Assembly: GCA_025558095.1 (NCBI GenBank)
Contig: JAIVFI010000038.1
Location: 124,001 to 188,000, forward strand
Source of the DNA: Hyaloraphidium curvatum SAG 235-1
Lineage: Eukaryota; Fungi; Monoblepharomycota
Reading direction: 5' to 3'
Length of the DNA stretch: 64,000 nt
Numbering within the stretch: position 1 is the stretch's first letter; every line of letters starts with the position of its first letter. Shown in pieces: positions 3,606-15,823 of the stretch. The position numbers were made by a program, and so were the translations under genes. The notes below the pieces were generated by a model that saw only the letters and a list, made by a program, of their open reading frames with translations, made no database searches and was not told the origin of the DNA.

Positions 3606-5040
3606 ATGCCGCCTGGAGACCGCTTTAGCGGCCTTGCTCCCTACATTGTCATTCCGCTCGTCACCACGCTCTTTGTGTACGCGACCCTGCCGCGACCTGA
3701 AGCTTCTCCTCCTTCCGCTGGTACATATCTCGCGTGGGCCCGGACTTCCGAAAGCTTCACCTAAACTGAACGCCCGGACCATTTTCCTCCAATGGTGCTT
3801 CGTCGTCATGTAGCCCTCTCTCTACCTCAGACGTCTTTCGCGGACGCCAACGTCGACTCGCGGATACGGGAGGCGGTGGAGTGCCTCAAGGCTCACGGAA
3901 ACTTCAAGGATGGGTGCTGGTGGAAGCTTCGGCGTGACGTCGCCTTTGCCGTGTGTTGCGCAACGCGTCAGCGCCTCTACGGGCCACATTGACGCGTGGA
4001 CCCCGGCAGGCGCTGGAACACCTCGCGTCCCTGCCACCGGCGGAGCTTGCGGAATTCTCGTTTGTCAACTCGGGCAAGACGGACCCGTCGGGAGGGTTTT
4101 ACGGATGGACATCGATGGACCTTCTCGTACCGACCTACGAGTGCAACTTCAACACTCTTCGCAGGTTCGGGGAGACGGCCGAGTACAAGACCGGGGACGG
4201 CGGGAAGTGGATGTGCGGTGATCTGAACCAGATCGTTCGGAACATCGTGCAGTCGCGCAACCGCCCGGCAGAGGGAGAGAAGGCCAACCACGCGCCGTGC
4301 ATCGTCTACTCCCTCGGGTCCAATAATCAGTTCGGCTTCGAGGAGAGCGTGAAGAAGATGACTGGAGCCTTGTGCGACGTTCACACGTTCGACTGCACCG
4401 GAGCCTGGACGAATCCGTCGACGACGTTCCACAGCTGGTGCCTGGGAATCGCTCCCAAAACTCCCATGGTTGCCAATGGGAGGGAGGTTCCGGCGTCGAG
4501 CTACAAGAATCTTGTTGAAATCACGTCGGAGCTGAAGCACGAATACGTTACGATCCTGAAGATGGGTAGGTTGAGCCGCGTCAAGCGCTGCAGACGGTAT
4601 CTCACCCAACTTGTGCCTTCTTTTGCTCAGACATCGAAGGTGCTGAGTATACCGTCTTTGACTCCCTTCTCGTTCCCGAGAGCTCGCATCTCCTGCCCGT
4701 CGTCATCTTTGTCGAGCTCCACACGCATCTCATCGCCAAACTCGACGAGTTTCTCCCAGAGCGCTACGTGCAGCAGCAAAACTGGGTCAAGCCTCTGTGG
4801 GAGCTCTACAAGAAGCTCGATGCATACGGATACGCTTTGGTGGCGAAAGAACGGAACGAATGGAGCCCAAGGGACAGCAAGTGCTGCACCGAGTACCTCT
4901 TTATGCGCATCAAGGAGGTGCAGGGGATCGACTTGGGGACTTTGCGAGGCTTTGGTTCGGCGTGGAGGTCGGGGAAGGGAGGAGCCGACGGCGATGCGGT
5001 GGCCAGCCGGCTTGGAATCTCGGAAAAGTACCCTGGTTGA
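3606..5040 (+). CDS. Membrane-anchored SAM-dependent methyltransferase (METTL24/Methyltransf_22-like)
   Basis: N-terminal signal anchor (LAPYIVIPLVTTLFVYATL). Motifs GDGGKWMCG, CIVYSLGSNNQFGFE, DVHTFDC, and spliced ILKM-DIEGAEY, then VELH and CCTEYLF. Confidence 0.85.
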
Positions 5041-5230
5041 ATGCCTCCCCTTCCCCCCCCTTCCCCTTCCCCCCCTCGTCTTTGTCACTTGGTGTATACC
5101 CTCGATGAATCTACTCTTGCGGTGGAAGAAGTCTAGCAGATGCGCGCGGATCAATTTGATTGGATTCCATTGAGGTTTTCGCTTTACATTGCCTCCCTTT
5201 CACTCCTCATGCAAGACGCTCGTCCGTCCC

Positions 5231-6305
5231 TCACAACGCCGGGTTGCCTAGCTCGGCCAGCGGGATGGTGGCTACGCACAGGCCCCTGAACGACCCGATC
5301 CACAGCTCATTGCCGACGACGATGGCGCTCGTGCCGCCACCAAAGTCTTTGGTGTGCTGCTCGACCAGGACCACCTTGGTGTCGAGGGTCTCGGCGTCGA
5401 CGTGCGAGACGGCAGTAGGGAGCGGGGCCGTAAGGATCGTCTCGGAGCCGACGACCTGGAAAAGCATCGTTGATGACGACGGAAGACTTGCGCGACGCGC
5501 CGATCGCCCCCACCTTCATGACCATGTCGACGGTGGTGGCCGGGTGGCCCGTGACCAGCAACCCGCCGGACGGCGAGAAGCGCACGTTGTCCGGGAAGAA
5601 GCCCACGGGAGCGGCCGACCGCTGGTACGGCGTGCGGCCGCGCGACAGCTTGTGGAGCTTGCCGTCAAAGTAGCCGCAGATGTACAGCCACTTCCCGTCT
5701 ACCGAAGCAACCAGACCGTTGTCGCCGCCGATCTCCGAGCCGGGCACGAGCGACCAGCCGCGGGCCGGATCCCACTCGAACACGAAGCCGCAGGGCTGCA
5801 GGGCGCGCGCCTTGTCGAGCACGTGCGGGTCCTCGGCATCAACAGTGACGGTGACCGCGAAGCCGCCGCCGGGCAGGTGTGCGACGGCGTTGCCGGACTG
5901 GTTGTGCGGGAGCTCGACGCCTCCGATCCAGACCATGGTCGGCGCGGCGCCGGCGAGGTCGAGCTCGAACGCCTCGACCGAATGGCGGCCGCCGTGGTTG
6001 ACGGCGAGTACGTGGTACTTCTTGCTGCCGAGCGGCTGCACCGCGATGCCGTGCGACGAGAAGCGGTCAACCGGGGGTGGTTGCGCGCCCTCGAACGGCG
6101 CCTTCGCGGGCTTGGAGAAATCAGCGACGAGCGGCTGCGCCTTTTTCGACGCGATGTCGATGAGATGGAAGCCCCCCGCCACCCATCCATGCCCGCCCAT
6201 GTTCGAGGCCAGCACCACGCCGCTGCCCTCGAGGACAAGGAGGTCCTCGGGGTTGTTGAGCTCGCGGATCAGAGTGAACCGTCCCTGCTTGTCGCTGCTG
6301 GCCAT
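5231..6305 (-). CDS. Six-bladed beta-propeller lactonase/arylesterase (paraoxonase/SMP-30-gluconolactonase-like)
   Basis: NPEDL, FSSHGI, LAVNHG, GNAVA, GDNGL, FFPDNV and ELWIGSF motifs. One intron at 5456-5513 joins ORFs 5307-6305 and 5231-5467. Confidence 0.85.
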
Positions 6306-6791
6306 CGTTCGCGCGGTACCTATTTGTTGATGGATGTGGGAAGCTTTCTTCGCACGGTCGGACAGGGCAACCTGCTTCGACAGAGTGGTGTTTTGTCTCC
6401 CGTGTGGCTACGTGGGGCGATGTGGCGAAGTCGGGCTGGCCTAACGGAGTCAAGGTCAGCGCTCGACGCAATCGGGCGAGGAATCATCTCTAGGTGTACA
6501 ATGCTCGGTGGTATCCTATGTTATCACTGCCGCTCAATCCGTGCCGCGATACCCGTTCTCGATGGCGGTCAGCACCGTCCCGAAGCCGGAGGGCGTCGTC
6601 CCGCCGATCCACAGCTCCCCGCCTACAAAAGACAAGCGTATGTTGTTGGGCGACATCTATACATGTCATTTGGATGTATACCTACGACGAATCAACTCTT
6701 GCGGTGAGGACGGCGAGCAGCGGCCCAACTCGATTGGCTCCGCGGGCGACCTCGTCACTCGGCCGGCAACATCTCCCGTCCTCGCACAAAG

Positions 6792-9700
6792 ATGGCGCAC
6801 AGGGCGTCGAAAGACCGCATCGACGCCGTGACGCGGCAGCTCATCGGCGGGCAGGCTCGTCCCGCCGCGTCGCCCGTGGCTGGCGCGCCTGTCGCGGCAG
6901 GACGCGCCGCGCACCGGCTCCTGATTGCCAATCGCGGGGAGATCGCGATTCGCGTCATTCGAGCGGCCAAAGCGTACTCGCGCGTCGCTGATGGAGCTTC
7001 CGGCATCGTGACCATAGCGATCTACACCGCGGAGGATACGAAGGACGCCCTGTTCGCGCACACCGCGGACGAGGCCCACGAAGTCACATCGTACACAGAT
7101 GCGGCGGCCATCGTTGGGCTCGCAAAAGGTGTGGGCGCCACCGCTGTTCATCCCGGCTACGGATTCCTGAGCGAGGACGCGACGTTCGCGCGCCTTGTCG
7201 TCGACGCTGGCTTGACCTGGATTGGACCGTCTCCCGCACTCCTTGAGCTATTCGGGGACAAAGTTCGGGCCAAGAAACTGGCTAAAAAGGCAGCTGTCCC
7301 TGTGACTCGAGGGTCGGATCGCTCTTTCTCGGACTTCCCGTCTTTGCAGTCGTGGTTGGACGGGCGACCTGCCGAAGAGCGCCTTCGCTTTCCGCTCATC
7401 CTCAAGTCGACCACCGGCGGAGGCGGCCGCGGTATCCGTCCCGTCTTCCAAGCCGAAGAATTGCCTTCCGTGTTCGATCAGACTCTGAGGGAAGCCACAG
7501 CCTTCACGACGACTCCTTCCGTCTTTGTCGAGGAGTTCCTGCCTTCGCCCAAACATCTCGAAGTCCAGTTTTTGGGCGACGCCAAGGGCATCCGCACCGT
7601 CGGACCTCCGAGAGATTGTTCCATTCAGCGGCGGAGGCAGAAGGTGGTCGAGTTCTGCCCCCCGGTCGGACTCCATCCCCAGCTCGCGCAGCGATTGGAC
7701 CTCTACGCTGCGCAGCTTCTAGAGCACCTCGACGAACCGTACTTGGGCGCCGGGACCGTCGAATTCCTCCTCCCAGGACCTTTGGACGATCCAGATACCC
7801 CGATATTCTTCACAGAGCTGAATCCGCGGATCCAAGTCGAGCACACAGTGACCGAGATGGTGACGGGAATCGATCTCGTGTTGTGTCAACTCAGGCTTTG
7901 TCTAGATGGTGCTTTGTTGCTGTCTTTGCTCCCGCCATCCCTCCAGGCAACTGGAACGGCCATTCAGGCGCGTATTAACCTCCATCCCTCGACTGAGGGC
8001 GGTTCGGTCGTGGAGACCTACGTGGAGCCGATCGGTGCCGGCGTTCGTGTCGACTCGGGACTCGCCGTGGGCATGAAAATCAGCACTGCGTACGATCCCA
8101 TGGTGGCCAAGCTCATCGTTTGGACGGACCAGTTGGAACAGCCCGAACAGACTTCGGCCCAGAAGCGGCAGGGAGTCGTCCCGAAATCTACATCATTCGA
8201 GGCCGCGCGAAGGAAATTAGTCGCTGCTCTGGATCAGCTGGTCATTTCGGGCAAAGGTGTGCGGACGAACGTGGGGTATTTGAAGCAGCTCCTGAACGTC
8301 GAAGAGTATGTTCATGGCGACGCGCGCACGGATCTACTCGAAGACGACGCGTTGGAGGAGGTTTTGTGGCTGCTCAGTTCGACAGATCTCGATTCGGGCG
8401 ATCTGACCGTGGCGGACGGCGAGGACGTTGCGGAACCGGAGGTTGGGAGTGTCGTCGAAGTCAAGTCCGCCATTGCTGGCTCAATCACGGCTTCGTTCGT
8501 CGAGCGGGATCGCCCTTTCCGGAAGGGACAGCCGCTGCTGGTGCTGACTAGCATGAAGATGGAGAGCTTCGTGGTAGCGCCCAGCGACGGCTACGTGGTT
8601 GAAGCCGGTCGTGTCGGCAAAGGCCACGTCGTGAAGGTTGGCGATCTGGTTTGCTCTTTCCGCCCCGCTACTTTGGACGCGTCTATTCCTGCGGTTTCAT
8701 CGGATCCGCAGGAATCCTGGGCAAAGGAGCTGGAAGAGATCGATCGTCGGCGGGAACTTGGACGCCGCCTGGGCGGGCCAAAGGCGGTCGAGGCGCAAAG
8801 GGCCGCGGGTCGGCTGAATCTGCGCGAAAGAATCGATCTGCTGCTTGACCGGGGTACCTTTTTCGAGTTTGGGAAGACAGCCGGCCAGGGGTTCAAAGAT
8901 CCCGAGTCGGGGGCGCTCCAAGATGTCATCCCCGGCAACTTCATTCTCGGGACGGGCGAAATCGAGAAGCGGCGAGTCGTTGTCGGCGGAGAGGACTTCT
9001 CGATCCAGGGCGGGTCCCCGAACCTCGCCGGGCTTCGAAAGTCGATCTACACCGAGACCCTTGCCCTCGACTTGCTTTGTCCGCTCGTTCGTCTTCACGA
9101 AGGCGGCGGCGGCTCTGTCGGCGGTGCGGACAACCGCAGGGACCAGAGCAACGCCAATCAGTACCGGTCTCCACCGTCGTCGGCGTTTGAGATTCCGAGA
9201 TTCCAATCTGTGGCGCAGGTTCTCAGTCGGGTTCCTGTCGTCAGCGCAGCAATGGGCACGGTGGCAGGGCTTCCAGCAAGCCGCTTTGCCGCGTCGCACT
9301 TCTGCGTCATGGTCGCGAACGGCAACGCTCAGGTGATCACGGCCGGGCCGAAGGTTGTCGAGCGCGCGTTGGGCTACGTCACGACCAAGCAGGAACTCGG
9401 GGGTCCGGCGATGCATGAGCTCTCGGGTGTCGTGGACAATTTCGCGGGTTCTGAAGAGGACGCACTCCGTCAGATCAGGCGCTTTCTTTCCTTCCTCCCC
9501 TCCAATGTCTTTGAGCTTCCACCGAGGACGGCAGAAGTTGCCTCGCGGCCTCCTTCCGAACTGCGGGAGCTGGACTCGATTGTGCCACGGTCTCGGAGAC
9601 AAACTTTTGACATGCGTCGAGTCTTGCAACTCACCTTCGACGAGAACACTTTCTTCGAGATCGGAGCTGGTCCAAAGTGGGGCCAGACACAGATCACGGG

Positions 9701-10420
9701 TCTCGCGCGTCTCAATGGCTACCCTGTGGCGGTGATGGCAAACGATTGCCGCTTCCTGGCTGGCGCCATGACGGCTGATGGTGCCCAGAAGGTCTGGTTT
9801 TGCACTTGCACCTGGATTGCCGAAGACTTAGCCGATTCGCAGGTGACCCGCTTCATTGAGTTTGCCCACCAGTTCCGCCTTCCAATGATCTCGTTCGTGG
9901 ACGAACCGGGCTTCGATATTGGTCTCGATGCCGAGCGGGCCGGGACAATTCGATGGGGCACGAAAGCCGTCTTGACGGCGCAGAATGCTCGCATCCCTTG
10001 GTGAGGACTGCTGATTATGTGGTTGAAACCACATTCCTCACGTGTTTCTTGTGACCCAGGTGCTCGGTCATCGTGCGCAAGCTTTACGGGGTCGCTGGGG
10101 CGGTCCACTTTGCGCCGAAGGGCTACATCCTCACCTGGCCCTCATTCGAAAGCGGGGCTTTGCCTTTGGAATCGGGTGTCGCGGTTGCCTTTGCGAAGCA
10201 GATCGCGGCGTCTCCAGATCCCGAGAAGACCCGGATGGAGCTCGAGGCCCGCTTCTCGCGCGGACTGAGCCCGTTTCCCAGCGCAGAAGTCTTCGGACAA
10301 CATGATCTCGTCAGGCCCGCGGAGACCAGGGAGTACCTGGTTGCCTGGATCCATCGAAGCTGGCCGCTTTTGTCGCGCCTGGATCCGGAGACGGTCGGAC
10401 TGTTCGGGTACCGTGGATGA
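6792..10420 (+). CDS. Single-chain biotin-dependent acyl-CoA carboxylase (biotin carboxylase + BCCP + carboxyltransferase), about 1170 aa, with N-terminal PTS2
   Basis: BC motifs LIANRGEIA, HPGYGFLSE, GGGGRG, RDCSIQRRRQK and ELNPRIQVEH. Biotinyl motif SMKME. CT motifs RERIDLLLD, GEDFSIQGGS, AGPKVV, ELGG and FVDEPGF. Introns at 9792-9842 and about 10000-10058. Confidence 0.93.
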
Positions 10421-10461: not shown

Positions 10462-13400
10462 CTAGTCCGTCTTCCTCGTGGCGGCCTTCCGTTCGGCAGC
10501 CTTTTGTGCCATTTCGATCAGTATCGGCGCCTGCTCGGGACCCGTTTGGTCCACCAAGGCCCTGAAGCTTCCATCCGGCTTGGAGACGAGCTCCGCAGGT
10601 GAGCCGAACTCCAGAATCTCTCCATGTGAGAGGACGACGATCTTGTCGTAGTCAATTATCGTAAGCAGACGGTGCGCGATCGTCAAAATGGACGTGCCGC
10701 GGAACCGCTCGTCTTCGCGCAAAGTCCGTTGAATCGCGCTGTCCGTGTCCGCGTCGGCCGATGCTGTAGCCTCGTCCAGCACGACAATCCTCGAGCGACG
10801 GAGCTAAGACTGGTGAGAACTGTTGCGGGACAAGGCGCGCCACGAGAACTTACCATCACGCGCGCCAACGAGACAAGCTGCCGTTGCCCATTCGACAGCG
10901 ACTCTCCATTTTCGCTGATGGGCAGCAGCAAGCCATCCGGATGAGAAAGCACGAGCTCCTTGATGTTGCCCGCGTGCTCCAAGACGTCCATGATCTCCTG
11001 GTCACTGTACAGCTTAAACCTGCAAGATGGAGGTTGGAAACCGAAGTCGGTCACCACGAGCCCAAAACGACTGCCGGTCTGCACTCACGGGTCGAGATTG
11101 AAGCGCAGGGTTCCGCTGAACAACACGCTGTCCTGAGTTATGATAGAGAGCCGCGTTCGTACGTCGTCCAGGCCGATCTTCGTGTGGTCGATACCGTCGA
11201 TCGTGATCTTGCCACCGCACGGTTCCACGAGCCTAGCAACAGAATCAGCAATCAAATAACAAAGCGAATCGTCTCGTCCTTACCTGAAGAGAGCGTTCGT
11301 GATTGACGACTTGCCGGCACCAGTCCGACCGACGATCCCAACCCGCTCGCCAGGCTGGACAACGAAAGAAACCCCCTTCAGCACCAACGGCAGATCCGGA
11401 GCGTAGCGCATTTCCAGATCCTGGAAGTCTACGGCGCCTGCACTGGGCCATTCAGGCGGCGGGCGCACATCCGTGATCGCAGGAGCTTCTTGAGGCAGCT
11501 CTTCTGCGTAGGACAATAAACGCTCCGCAGCAATCATCTGCGTCTCGATTTCGGAGCCGAGTTCGACAACGTCTGTGCAGGAAGACGTGCATTAGCATTC
11601 GGATAAGCAACTGCGCGTGCGAGTGCCGCTTCGCAAAAGCGCCGATGCTCACAGTTCAGCACGAAAGATATCTGAGAACGAAATGAGAAGGCGATGCAAA
11701 ACAACGCACGAGCTTCTCCTTACCTGCATGGCGTTGGTGACGGCGAGGCCGAGCAATCCCGGCGCGGTAGCCGACGTTTGAGACGCCAGGACCGCGAACG
11801 TTGCCGACAGCAGAACCAGAATCGACGAGATCACCTCGAGCCGGAGGCTGAGCCAGCGTACCGTGTACATCATTGCGAACCAGTAGACGTTATTGCTGTC
11901 GAGCCTGTCCTCGGCAATGTGTTGGAAGACGACCGTCTTTTGGAATGCTCTGATCGTTGCCAGACCGGCAAGGGTCTCGGAATACAGCGCGTACAGAGGT
12001 GAGCGACTGATTGCTTCCATCTACAAGAGGGCACCCTGGTCAGGCGAACAAGCGGTAGAAGATTCGCCAGCGCACGTACTCGTTTGACGTCGCGAGCCGT
12101 CGCACGATAGAAGGTCGAGATCATCAAGTAAAGAGCCGCAAGAGGAACGAGAGGGGCGGCAAAAATAGGCGTCACCTGAGGTCCGGGGCGTCAGGGTATC
12201 GAGCGCTGGGTCTGCACCGGTAGACTCACGACTATGATGAAGATGATTGTGGAAATGCACTGTCCGACCATCCTGTACGCGAGCCATCAGAAGGGTGACG
12301 CGCACCAACCGCGCTCGGCCTTACCGAATGAAGAAACGAAGGGTGTCGGGGACGAAAGTGTCGAGAGACTCGACGTCTTTGCTGAACCTGACCAAGGACG
12401 TCATTTGCCGCCCAATGAAGCCTACCGAGTGACCCACCTGTTGAGGATCCGACCAACAGGAGTGCGGTCGAAAAAGGCGACAGGTGCGCCAAAGACACGA
12501 AGGAGGGCATCGTCATGCAGCTTCTTAGCCGATCTCGCTCCTCCGGTAGCGACAAGCAAGCCGTTCGTAAGCACCAGCAGCACTTGCGCCATGCCGATTG
12601 CGACGTAGATGCCCTGGTACCCGCCCAGAGAAAGTCCAAAAGTGCCTCGGCTCCATACGGTCGCGATCCACCAGTCCGTAAGAATGCGAGAGATCTGCAT
12701 GAGGCAGAGAGAAAGGACAATGCCAAGCACGATCCCCGCGCCGCCCATGGCCTTGAAGTACTTGAGCCAAACACTCAGGGTTACGGCTCCGGAATACCTC
12801 TCCTCGTCCGCGAAGAGGGCGCGCGCAGTCCCTGGATCTTCTCCGTACTTAGCTTTGGCGTCTTTGCCCTCATCGACACTGACAACAGGAGCGTCGACCT
12901 GAGCGGTCCCAGTTTCGCTGCCCTCCGATCCGGTGGTGTCCAACACCGAGTCCGAATCCGCGATCAGGCCGTACTCCTTCACCATGCGGGCAAGGTATCC
13001 AGCGCCGCCGTCGGTAGACCCCTGGAAGCCGACGAGATCCCTGTAGCTGCCCATTTCCACGACAGCGCCGCGCTTCAAGCAGATGATCTGGTCCGCGGCC
13101 GAAAGGATGTGGAGCGCGTGCGTCGCCATGATCACGGTTTTGGACTTCAGATAACCTCGGATGCACTGCTCAAACACAAAGGCCCCCGTGTGGCTGTCAA
13201 GCGCAGAGAGGATGTCGTCCAACACGTAGACCGAAGCGTCCTGGTAGATGGCACGCGCCAGAGCCAGCCTGGCCTTTTGGCCGCCTGAAAGTGAAAGACC
13301 CTTCTCGCCTACAACCGTAAAATCACCATCCGGAAAGGTGGCGAGGTCGCGCTCTAAGCTGCAGACTCGCAAGACCTCCGCATAGCGCTCCGCATTGAAG

Positions 13401-15563
13401 GGAGCTCCGAACAAAACGTTTCCTCGAATCGAGGCGCTCTGGATCCAGGGAGACTGCGCGGCATAGGCAATGGATCCCCGCAAAGCAACGTTCCCCGACA
13501 GCAGCTTCACGTCGCCAATGAGGCCGGCCAACAGGGTCGATTTCCCGGCGCCGACCGGCCCAACGATGAGAGTCAGTGAACCAGGTGAAAACGTCACGGC
13601 GGGAAGCGACAAGGTAAATTTGGTCGCCTCGGGCTTCAAGGCCTCCTCCCCGGGGGACGGCGCCCGGTCGTCGGTTTCGGGAACGGCCTCGAGTGCCTTT
13701 GCCAAAGCATCCTTCGTGTCCGAGTTGCCGCCCGTTTGCCCCGCCGTCTCGCCTGCCCCCGGTTTCCCACGTCGACGAAAGGTGCGGTCAAGCGTCCGCC
13801 AAACAAAGTTCTTGGAGCTGCTCTTCTGATCCTTGACGGCGTCGTCGAGGGTCTCCTGGGGCGGCACGCTGTCCCATTGGAAAACAGTGTTGTCGCTCAC
13901 GGTCACGAGCCCGGGCTGCCCGTCGCCATCCGTGCTGTGTCCGCGCTCCTGTACTTCCTCTGCCTCGAAAAGCTCCTGGAACCGCCCCAAGGAGACCCAA
14001 GCGTCCACGGCCCACGACAGCGCCATCGGAAGCAGGAGCAGGGGCCAACGAATGATCTCCAGCATGGCGATCGACGAGAGGATAATCGCCGGCGTGAACT
14101 CGCCCCCGGCTGCCGAATAGCAAAGGAACATGACGATCGAGGCAATAATAGGTCCGGCCATGCTGACGAGACCGACGTAGACCCTGTAGAAAAGGATCTG
14201 GCGGACCTTGTCCATCTCGGGAGCCCGCATGTCGTCCATGATCGTGGCCGTGATCGGTTTCGTATAGCCCAAAAACTTGATTACTCGAATTCCGGACACG
14301 GCCTGCGAGAACGTTCAGCGATCCTTCAGCCAGGTGGGTTTGCAACTCACCTCGTTGGTGAACTTGGAGCGGAGGTCCGTCCACTTGGACCCTGCCGCCC
14401 TCAGCTCCCCGGCCTTCTTCATCACGAAGCCCGTGACCGGGACCATGATGAATATGAGCACGATTGCGCCGACTATAGCCGGCCAGCCGAGGTTGAGGAT
14501 GAGGAGAATGATCCCGACCGAGATCGAGATGGGCCCCGAGTACAGGGTGTGCAGCTCAGGAATGGCGCGGTCGATTCGGGTGGCATCCGTGCTGACCAGG
14601 TTCACGACGGTGCCTCCAGTGTGCTTCAGCCGGCTGCCGGAAGAGAGCTTCAGAAGCTTCGTGTACGTGTACGACATGAGCGAGGTCTTGATCTCGAATC
14701 CGATCCGCTGCGAATGCAGCCAGGTCCAGTTCATGCAGAAGGACTGGAGGACCAAAATCGCGCCCAGACCAAAGGCCATGACATATCCGCGCCACGACTC
14801 GGGCAGTGGCTGCCCCGCGGAGTACGCCGCTGAGGACTGGCTCAGGAACCCGATGAGCTGCCGCAGCACGAGCGGCGACGCGATCCCGCAAGCGTCCGCT
14901 GTGAGCCGCAGGACGGCCGCAACAAAGAACTTCTTGCGGTAGGTCCTCCAGACGGCGCGCATGAGCGACGGCCGGTTCTTCGCGTCAGAGCCGAATTCCG
15001 GCCCCGATTTGTCGTCCGCGGCGGCGGTCCCCTTCATCTCCACGGTTGCATGGGGAATGTTCGAGTCGGAAACGCCCACGATCGTCGAATTGAGGTCCAA
15101 CTCCATGGCCGCGAGCCTCTCGAGGCCGGCCGGAACGCGACCCTGTCCTCCGTGGCCGCCACTGTGTTCCGCGAGCTCCTTTTCCCATTCGACAATGAAC
15201 CGAGCTGAGCAATTGCGGGCCTCCTCGTTGCTGCATGGGGTCGAACCAAGGAACGAGACCATGGGAAGGAGCCGGGAGAGAGTCAGTGCTCCACGGAATC
15301 TTCCTGCCCCGGCGCCGGGGTACCCACGTCGGCAGCCTCCACACATCCTGCTCCGAAAGCGGCACCGCATCGGCAGCGGCGCCTGCAGCGCCGCCCCGCT
15401 TCTCCAGATCCTTGATCGCCCGCTGCACCGCGCGATGCCTGGTCCATCCGTCGATGTGCAGTCCCGTCGCCCAGTGGAAAGTCCCGAGCGACCACCACGG
15501 CGCCGTTTCCTCCGGATGAGGCAGATCGCGCCGCGAGCCCGTGCTCGGCGCCTCCTTGCCCAT
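10462..15563 (-). CDS. ABCC (MRP/YOR1-like) full-length ABC transporter without TMD0
   Basis: TMD1-NBD1-TMD2-NBD2 order. Motifs [63 protein letters not shown] and IAHRL. About 10 short introns. Confidence 0.95.
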
Positions 15564-15823
15564 CTTGGGCGTGGGAGAAAGAGGGTTGAGCGATTGGTTT
15601 TCCCGGGATCCGAAGCGCAACGCCGCCCGGCTTGCCACAGGTCCTCTGATCGGGCTATGCATGCGAATGGCACCTCTCTGATCCAAAGGCGGGATCGGCA
15701 TCCTCGGGCGTTCCCGAATATAGCCTCTGACCGTCAGCTTCTTCGTCTCTGAAGCAATCTACATCATCCCCGACATAGGCATCATCATCCGATCGTGCTC
15801 TAGCTCCCATCTCTCCCAACCCA

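Follow-up and report, generated by a model that had tools for sequence, protein, structure and literature searches.

A candidate peroxisomal single-chain biotin-dependent acyl-CoA carboxylase of presumably chimeric architecture in the fungus Hyaloraphidium curvatum

Results

A spliced single-chain carboxylase gene

The DNA analysed here, in the following called the window, is a stretch of 64,000 nt of Hyaloraphidium curvatum SAG 235-1 (contig JAIVFI010000038.1, positions 124,001 to 188,000 of the forward strand). At 6792-10420 on the plus strand it harbours a gene of three exons whose 1172-aa product is a single-chain carboxylase with a putative type 2 peroxisomal targeting signal (PTS2) close to its N-terminus. 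The product is identical to KAI9004379.1 (P0001) of H. curvatum, which is annotated as 'carboxyl transferase domain-containing protein', and the gene sits on a contig of 516 kb (C38). All coordinates of features are compiled in Table 1.

The raw open reading frame (ORF) spans 6792-10004 and a second in-frame piece terminates at 10420; the raw frame continues across the first intron because this short intron is in frame and free of stop codons. Translation exon by exon reproduced P0001. For whole-protein analyses the public P0001 sequence was used, and the exons were translated singly. Both introns were absent, at GT..AG borders, from the contigs of run X1, the sole public run that contains the stretch. 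With both introns skipped in its contigs, the run behaves like RNA; expression and splicing of the gene follow from this. An in-frame stop codon is located 29 codons upstream of the ATG at 6792, which is the first ATG after this stop, and the next Met occurs only at about residue 355. Thus, barring an unseen upstream exon, translation of the biotin carboxylase (BC) domain must start at 6792. The C-terminus (...GYRG) carries no type 1 peroxisomal targeting signal (PTS1).

Pfam and NCBIfam models placed a BC, a biotin carboxyl carrier protein (BCCP) and a carboxyltransferase (CT) domain in this order on one chain. In detail, Biotin_carb_N (PF00289) was matched at residues 41-149, ATP-grasp (PF02786) at 156-372, Biotin_carb_C (PF02785) from 406, the biotinyl domain (PF00364) at 548-621 and Carboxyl_trans (PF01039) from 669 to the end. 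The BC motifs are intact (GGGGRG at 209, RDCSIQRR at 274, ELNPRIQVEH at 342), and the predicted biotinyl-lysine K589 (nt 8556-8558) is part of the motif SMKME, which is invariant in both orthologues described below. Both oxyanion-hole glycine motifs of the CT domain are present as well; in the alignment with PccB, FGG pairs with QGG and FAG with LAG. By its domains and catalytic motifs the product is classified as a biotin-dependent acyl-CoA carboxylase, acyl-CoA carboxylation being the predicted activity. The first-pass annotation of the window had described a chain of roughly 1170 aa made up of three modules, with a PTS2 at residues 9-17 (nt 6816-6842) in front of an Ala/Pro linker. The former description agrees with the 1172-aa model and its Pfam and NCBIfam domains, the latter with the pattern match and the translation.

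The PTS2 is conserved in an otherwise divergent leader

The nonapeptide RIDAVTRQL is the sole match to the pattern R-[LVI]-x5-[HQ]-[LA] in the whole protein. It belongs to an extension of 40 aa that the bacterial relatives do not have, their chains beginning at the BC domain. According to the refined PTS2 consensus, R-[LVIQ]-x-x-[LVIH]-[LSGA]-x-[HQ]-[LA], the nonapeptide fits at positions 1, 2, 5, 8 and 9. Peroxisomal 3-ketoacyl-CoA thiolase is the classical cargo of the PTS2 route. It resembles the C38 protein in having, near the start Met, a nonapeptide (R-[LVI]-x5-[HQ]-L) and behind it a stretch of Gly, Ser, Ala and Pro; the two enzymes are unrelated and have the targeting signal alone in common.

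To judge how often such a match arises by chance, two backgrounds were used. Shuffling the 40-aa leader of the protein gave the pattern in 1.8% of cases, and it was present within the first 40 residues of nine out of 628 (1.4%) H. curvatum ORFs that start with ATG and encode at least 100 aa, a set that represents part of the H. curvatum DNA and includes real PTS2 genes.

Close relatives of the protein are rare: among 5.8 billion proteins only two were found (66% and 68% identity), both of environmental origin. The one with 66% identity (L001) is encoded on an intron-bearing contig of 26.9 kb, its first exon reading MASKDQSNTSTKRRLDAVAAQLGVEG. Here, RLDAVAAQL occupies residues 14-22, directly after an 'ASKD' that is common to both proteins. 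In the pairwise alignment six of the nine nonapeptide residues are identical and the I/L exchange is conservative, and the following linker of 23-30 residues is essentially unalignable up to the BC domain. The check for PTS2 conservation that had been suggested in the first-pass annotation hence found the nonapeptide kept, and the linker diverged, in the sole orthologue with a recoverable N-terminus. Because the motif is conserved, the match goes beyond chance.

The position of the intron after 'IPW' is the same in the orthologues, and both P0002 and P0003 run into unspliced sequence just past IPW. Moreover, a downstream convergent ABC transporter gene is common to both contigs, with 56% identity of the products. 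This agreement in intron position and neighbour shows common descent, so that the leader goes back to the ancestor of the two genes. The second relative, P0003 (L002, L003), ends at a contig edge before its N-terminus. A word search that used residues 1-330 as query returned generic BC proteins only (at most 46% identity) and no further orthologue N-terminus, and a scan of metagenomes with clade-specific peptides yielded nothing above 38% identity.

PTS2 leaders recur on paralogous genes

The peroxisomal 3-ketoacyl-CoA thiolase gene of H. curvatum was found on another contig (C44:194764-198555, L004; minus strand, ATG at 2512). Among PDB entries, the peroxisomal thiolases of human, plant and yeast match its product best. 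A short first exon encodes the canonical PTS2 MASRVEQVASHL; the N-terminus reads MASRVEQVASHLAGG and is followed by an intron and then by the usual KSPDDVV... With a canonical thiolase cargo that retains its PTS2, the PTS2 route is predicted to be in use in H. curvatum.

Genome searches that used P0001 and the CT family as queries revealed a PTS2 at the start of no fewer than eight additional genes for carboxylases or carboxyltransferases (Table 1). The C38 enzyme is hence one of at least nine carboxylase or carboxyltransferase proteins with a predicted PTS2 in this genome. Three of the paralogues are single chains (C7, C4, C12), of which C4 and C12 both begin with 'MKVSW' and have the motif at around residue 40. 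The CT-only genes with a PTS2 contain many short introns each. In every PTS2 paralogue the motif is followed by a Pro/Ala/Ser-rich linker, as in the gene under study. A stand-alone BC-BCCP partner with a PTS2 for the CT-only genes was not seen among the paralogue loci that these searches returned. A further CT gene was detected on C27 (L039); its N-terminus was not found.

The PCCB-like and the MCCB-like gene and a BC gene on C28 encode long Arg/Ala/Ser leaders with no acidic residue and no PTS2. Judged from these leaders, the three genes represent putative mitochondrial-type controls within the same genome.

The CT domain descends from stand-alone bacterial proteins

Over the whole chain the protein shared 35-39% identity with many bacterial carboxylases of the single-chain type. 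Its CT domain alone was 53-59% identical, at full length from their residue 2, to stand-alone bacterial CTs of 515-520 aa, which are annotated as 'propionyl-CoA carboxylase' in members of SAR324, of the Hyphomicrobiaceae and of other Pseudomonadota. In contrast to the H. curvatum domain, these are not fused to BC-BCCP.

Trees were calculated from the CT domains with IQ-TREE and SH-aLRT support values; several paralogue rows in the trees are partial, single-exon pieces. In the CT tree the C38 gene formed, together with the two orthologues, a clade (SH-aLRT 100) that was nested within the stand-alone bacterial CTs (SH-aLRT 97 and 96), with P0246, P0256 and P0292 as sister group (SH-aLRT 91). The CT-only PTS2 paralogues grouped with CT domains from the single-chain family of bacteria (SH-aLRT 96), and the C4, C7 and C12 genes with another fused protein from bacteria, P0112 (SH-aLRT 100). 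As the paralogues thus fall into two further CT lineages with different bacterial relatives, the PTS2 recurs across three lineages.

In the BC tree the C38 domain grouped with the BC domains of single-chain carboxylases with an SH-aLRT of 90, which is below the mark of 95 in a quick tree with some partial rows. It was sister (SH-aLRT 94) to the BC domain of the diplonemid protein P0107 (EukProt, Namystynia karyoxenos), its closest non-orthologous relative on the tree. P0107 is itself a single-chain carboxylase of 1160 aa with an MCCB-like CT. Its start, MAHRVGVLQTHC, is a near-PTS2 (R-V-x5-H-C) like the leaders of C7 and C4, and the lineage has glycosomes.

Because the CT nests among stand-alone bacterial CTs while the BC groups with single-chain carboxylases, the simplest reading is that the protein would be a chimera of a single-chain-type BC-BCCP and a horizontally acquired stand-alone CT of the PccB/AccD kind, with moderate support for the BC half. 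Its presumed chimeric architecture would show that single-chain BC-BCCP-CT enzymes have arisen more than once.

Substrate class as judged from the CT domain

In biotin-dependent carboxylases the CT domain determines the substrate chemistry (PMC6491548). The best matches of the C38 domain among solved structures were PccB and the beta subunit of propionyl-CoA carboxylase (PCC; E 1e-64 to 1e-61), and first of all PccB of Streptomyces coelicolor (PDB 1XNV, 3IBB), which is a separate subunit there. More distant were the CT of LCC (long-chain acyl-CoA carboxylase; 4e-41) and the beta subunits of 3-methylcrotonyl-CoA carboxylase (MCC; 4e-41) and geranyl-CoA carboxylase (GCC; 3e-39). Likewise, in the CT tree the MCCB-like rows (P0107 of Namystynia, and C40a of H. 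curvatum) stood outside the large clade that contains the C38 protein. The CT domain is accordingly PccB-like and not of the MCC-beta/GCC-beta class, and this assignment speaks for a probable alpha-carboxylation of acyl-CoA that is saturated and of short or medium chain length. A geranyl-CoA carboxylating role as in the bacterial Atu pathway had been suggested in the first-pass annotation. The PccB-like CT argues against such gamma-carboxylation, and that suggestion is not upheld. The geranyl-CoA (5IKL) and 3-methylcrotonyl-CoA (3U9R) enzymes are biotin-dependent acyl-CoA carboxylases too; they differ in having two subunits and a CT of another class.

A kinship with LCC, proposed at the same stage, holds in part. 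Mycobacterial LCC (4RCN) is likewise a single chain of about 1100-1200 aa with the same order of BC, BCCP and CT, and the alignment is colinear (query 42-1146 to chain 4-1069, E 1e-106). The CT of the H. curvatum protein, however, is closer to PccB than to the LCC domain by the E values given above, nests among the stand-alone CTs and is thus not of the LCC lineage; furthermore, the H. curvatum gene is eukaryotic, bears introns and encodes a PTS2 leader of 40 aa. LCC forms a homohexamer and is active on C2-C16 acyl-CoAs, with a far lower Km for palmitoyl-CoA (PMC6491548). Another single-polypeptide carboxylase, SACE_4237 of Saccharopolyspora erythraea, acts on acetyl- and propionyl-CoA and not on palmitoyl-CoA (PMC6491548). 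It is a homodimer of about 190 kDa of the eukaryotic acetyl-CoA carboxylase type and is likened to the C38 enzyme here by description, not by sequence comparison.

Genes next to the bacterial CT relatives include acyl-CoA dehydrogenases, malonyl-CoA decarboxylase and a small biotinyl carrier. In two of five contexts (among them L046:9001-10797, P0325) a gene for a biotinyl carrier of 71-73 aa is directly adjacent, and a BC gene adjoins the CT in none of the five. The combination of a CT and a small biotinyl carrier with no BC nearby hints at a system that may resemble a decarboxylase or transcarboxylase. The genome of H. curvatum contains one methylmalonyl-CoA mutase and one malonyl-CoA decarboxylase; the latter ends with -ALK in the raw frame, and termini read from raw frames are not interpretable.

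Neighbouring genes in the window

The carboxylase gene is followed by the ABC transporter gene and preceded by a divergent ORF of 332 aa (Table 1). The tail-to-tail arrangement with the transporter gene is kept in the orthologous contig (L001:9066-13830, minus strand), and one RNA-derived contig crosses the 3' ends of both genes. For the 332-aa ORF no Pfam match was obtained, and its matches to paraoxonase were non-significant (E about 0.9). Co-transfer of this upstream neighbour together with the CT was considered and rejected, the ORF being dissimilar to the SGL-family gene that stands beside one bacterial CT (E 0.17).

Two further ORFs of the window were recorded. At 1087-1707 on the minus strand, a 206-aa ORF gave a weak match to 4HBT (hotdog thioesterase; E 0.005, below the Pfam cut-off) and ends with -ARL, which is PTS1-like. 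An ORF at 3953-5173 on the plus strand contains a Methyltransf_22 domain (E 3e-15).

Table 1 Features of the carboxylase gene, its neighbours in the window and paralogous H. curvatum genes with a predicted PTS2
Feature	Position (nt)	Strand	Description
Exon 1	6792..9791	+	Residues 1-1000: PTS2 leader, BC, BCCP and most of CT; translation equals P0001 1-1000; covered by run X1 contig over 6975-9789
PTS2 nonapeptide R-I-D-A-V-T-R-Q-L	6816..6842	+	Residues 9-17; pattern match
Ala/Pro/Gly-rich linker	6843..6911	+	Residues 18-40, spacer between PTS2 and BC; not conserved in the orthologue
Biotin carboxylase (ATP-grasp) domain	6912..8351	+	Residues 41-520; Pfam and NCBIfam BC models, E down to 1e-101
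BCCP domain	8433..8654	+	Residues 548-621; PF00364; SMKME
CT domain, first part	8709..9791	+	Residues 640-1000; PF01039; start matches residue 2 (S-W-..) of stand-alone bacterial CTs
Intron 1	9792..9842	+	51 nt, GT..AG, in frame, stop-free; joint in run X1 contig; missing from P0001
Exon 2	9843..10000	+	CT continued; ends in split Trp codon TG/G
Intron 2	10001..10059	+	59 nt, GTGAGG..CCCAG; joint in run X1 contig; position after 'IPW' common to orthologues in L001 and L002
Exon 3	10060..10420	+	C-terminal end of CT; stop TGA at 10418-10420
ABC transporter gene	10462-15700	-	ABC_tran and ABC_membrane domains; tail-to-tail with carboxylase gene
332-aa ORF	5307-6305	-	Divergent from carboxylase gene, about 490 bp between ATGs; RNA contig reaches 6442
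Paralogue C7 (L038)	start near 5459+	-	Single chain; N-terminus MAERRRLGVIAGHL; motif RLGVIAGHL
Paralogue C4 (L036)	1549..		Single chain; MKVSW...SSRLGAIAGHLAK; motif RLGAIAGHL
Paralogue C12 (L037)	1608..		Single chain; MKVSW...SRVSAIASHLAK on separate first exon; motif RVSAIASHL
Paralogue C40 (L040)			CT only; ...AERLRRVALHF
Paralogue C39 (L041)			CT only; ...GRARLEALSAQL
Paralogue C41 (L042)			CT only; ...KDRVDLVRSHL
Paralogue C3 (L044)			CT only; ...EKRVASVASHL
Paralogue C25 (L043)			CT only; ...TARISQLSSHL; tentative gene model, halves 4.5 kb apart

Discussion

We propose, with a probability of roughly 0.7, that the C38 gene is a nuclear, transcribed gene for a single-chain carboxylase, a chimera with a PTS2 leader that would be imported into peroxisomes and would carboxylate short or medium acyl-CoA there; the import, the compartment, the substrate and the role in a pathway are what we infer from the sequences. 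The peroxisomal reading of the leader is well supported in silico. The enzyme would be biotinylated and folded in the cytosol, the receptor Pex7 would bind the nonapeptide, and the protein would then be imported into the peroxisome. Inside, it would use imported ATP and bicarbonate for the alpha-carboxylation of short or medium saturated acyl-CoA of the acetyl, propionyl or butyryl type.

A wider proposal, for which we see the odds as even, is that peroxisomes of H. curvatum house a whole bacterial-derived module for the biotin- and ATP-dependent carboxylation or transcarboxylation of acyl-CoA. This module would consist of four single chains (C38, C4, C7, C12) and at least four to five CT-only proteins (C40, C39, C41, C3 and perhaps C25) from three lineages, all of them PTS2-tagged, with the C38 enzyme as a chimera made in a eukaryote.

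Several observations weigh against the first of these proposals. A single occurrence of the PTS2 pattern is weak evidence, because 1-2% of such leaders match by chance, and the conservation claim is based on one orthologue N-terminus only. Position 6 of the nonapeptide is Thr, outside the [LSGA] of the refined consensus, and Ala in the orthologue. Upstream of 6975, where the RNA-derived contig starts next to adapter sequence, 6443-6974 is uncovered, a stretch that holds both the start codon and the codons of the PTS2. Arg, Ala and Pro abound in the leader past the motif; its 40 residues include six Arg and Lys against two Asp. A scan for PEX7 by WD40 repeats gave 149 matches over dozens of genes, not distinguishable from one another. 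With regard to the substrate, Thr occupies the position of the PccB specificity residue D422 in the alignment, so that specificity for propionyl-CoA cannot be assumed, and no conserved operon, and hence no clue to the substrate, was found around the bacterial CT relatives in the five contexts.

Since the leader is Arg/Ala/Pro-rich past the motif, a mitochondrial predictor might also score it. The extension could thus serve as a mitochondrial presequence, whether by itself or in dual targeting, with the PTS2 being incidental and the protein an extra mitochondrial acyl-CoA carboxylase. The net positive charge would fit, mitochondria are the site of the familiar eukaryotic PCC and MCC, and a methylmalonyl-CoA mutase is encoded in the genome. 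However, two Asp are found within the first 11 residues, the leader of the L001 orthologue contains three acidic residues and has little net charge, and the part that is conserved is exactly the nonapeptide and not a basic amphipathic stretch. The leaders of the mitochondrial-type controls, in contrast, are acid-free and lack a PTS2, and the signal recurs on at least eight paralogues and on the peroxisomal thiolase. We consider mitochondrial targeting unlikely, though it is the strongest competitor of peroxisomal import.

Somewhat less probable still is a cytosolic enzyme, with a motif that is not used or with a true N-terminus other than the annotated one. The missing 5' coverage by RNA contigs and the chance frequency of the pattern are in line with it. 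Yet the ATG at 6792 is the first one past the in-frame stop and no other Met precedes residue 355 or so, so that, barring an upstream exon, the BC domain is not translatable without the leader; and the motif was kept at 66% overall identity with diverging flanks, in an extension that is absent from bacterial relatives.

Within peroxisomes, the enzyme could alternatively perform an MCC- or GCC-like gamma-carboxylation of beta-methyl-branched enoyl-CoAs of the geranyl-CoA type and thereby unblock the beta-oxidation of isoprenoids. Peroxisomes do process branched-chain acyl-CoAs, and the thioesterase-like ORF of the window ends with -ARL, but the far better match of the CT to PccB and PCC-beta than to MCC-beta and GCC-beta, together with the MCCB-like rows outside its clade, makes this chemistry improbable. 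Bacterial contamination or a misassembled bacterial gene, which the bacterial closest relatives of both halves (besides the two environmental orthologues) might suggest, was rejected on the evidence of splicing and synteny and has a negligible chance of being true: two GT..AG introns are spliced out in the run X1 contigs, the leader is eukaryote-specific, and the contig that bears the gene is 516 kb long and has, as the gene's neighbour, an ABC transporter gene that recurs on a second intron-bearing eukaryotic contig.

To our knowledge, biotin-dependent carboxylases have been described only from the cytosol, mitochondria and plastids. Full-text literature searches for PTS2 in combination with biotin carboxylases, and for peroxisomal acyl-CoA, propionyl-CoA or acetyl-CoA carboxylase, retrieved no paper on a peroxisomal biotin carboxylase. 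In a proximity-labelling study of the Histoplasma peroxisome from 2026, pyruvate carboxylase and MCC appear solely in the role of normalisation standards, being endogenously biotinylated. The enzyme class itself is known; its chimeric architecture, its setting in a eukaryote and the compartment predicted for it are new.

The PTS2, conserved on this enzyme and carried by at least eight related proteins of the same genome, leads to a directly testable claim, namely that ATP- and bicarbonate-dependent carboxylation of acyl-CoA takes place in the peroxisomes of an early-diverging fungus. If true, this would be a new class of reaction in peroxisomes, which might process propionyl-CoA and other short acyl-CoAs from beta-oxidation or make extender units of the malonyl type. 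It would also mean that the PTS2 route imports a large, pre-biotinylated and probably oligomeric enzyme, and that bacterial genes were domesticated repeatedly in one genome by way of introns, fusion and a targeting signal.

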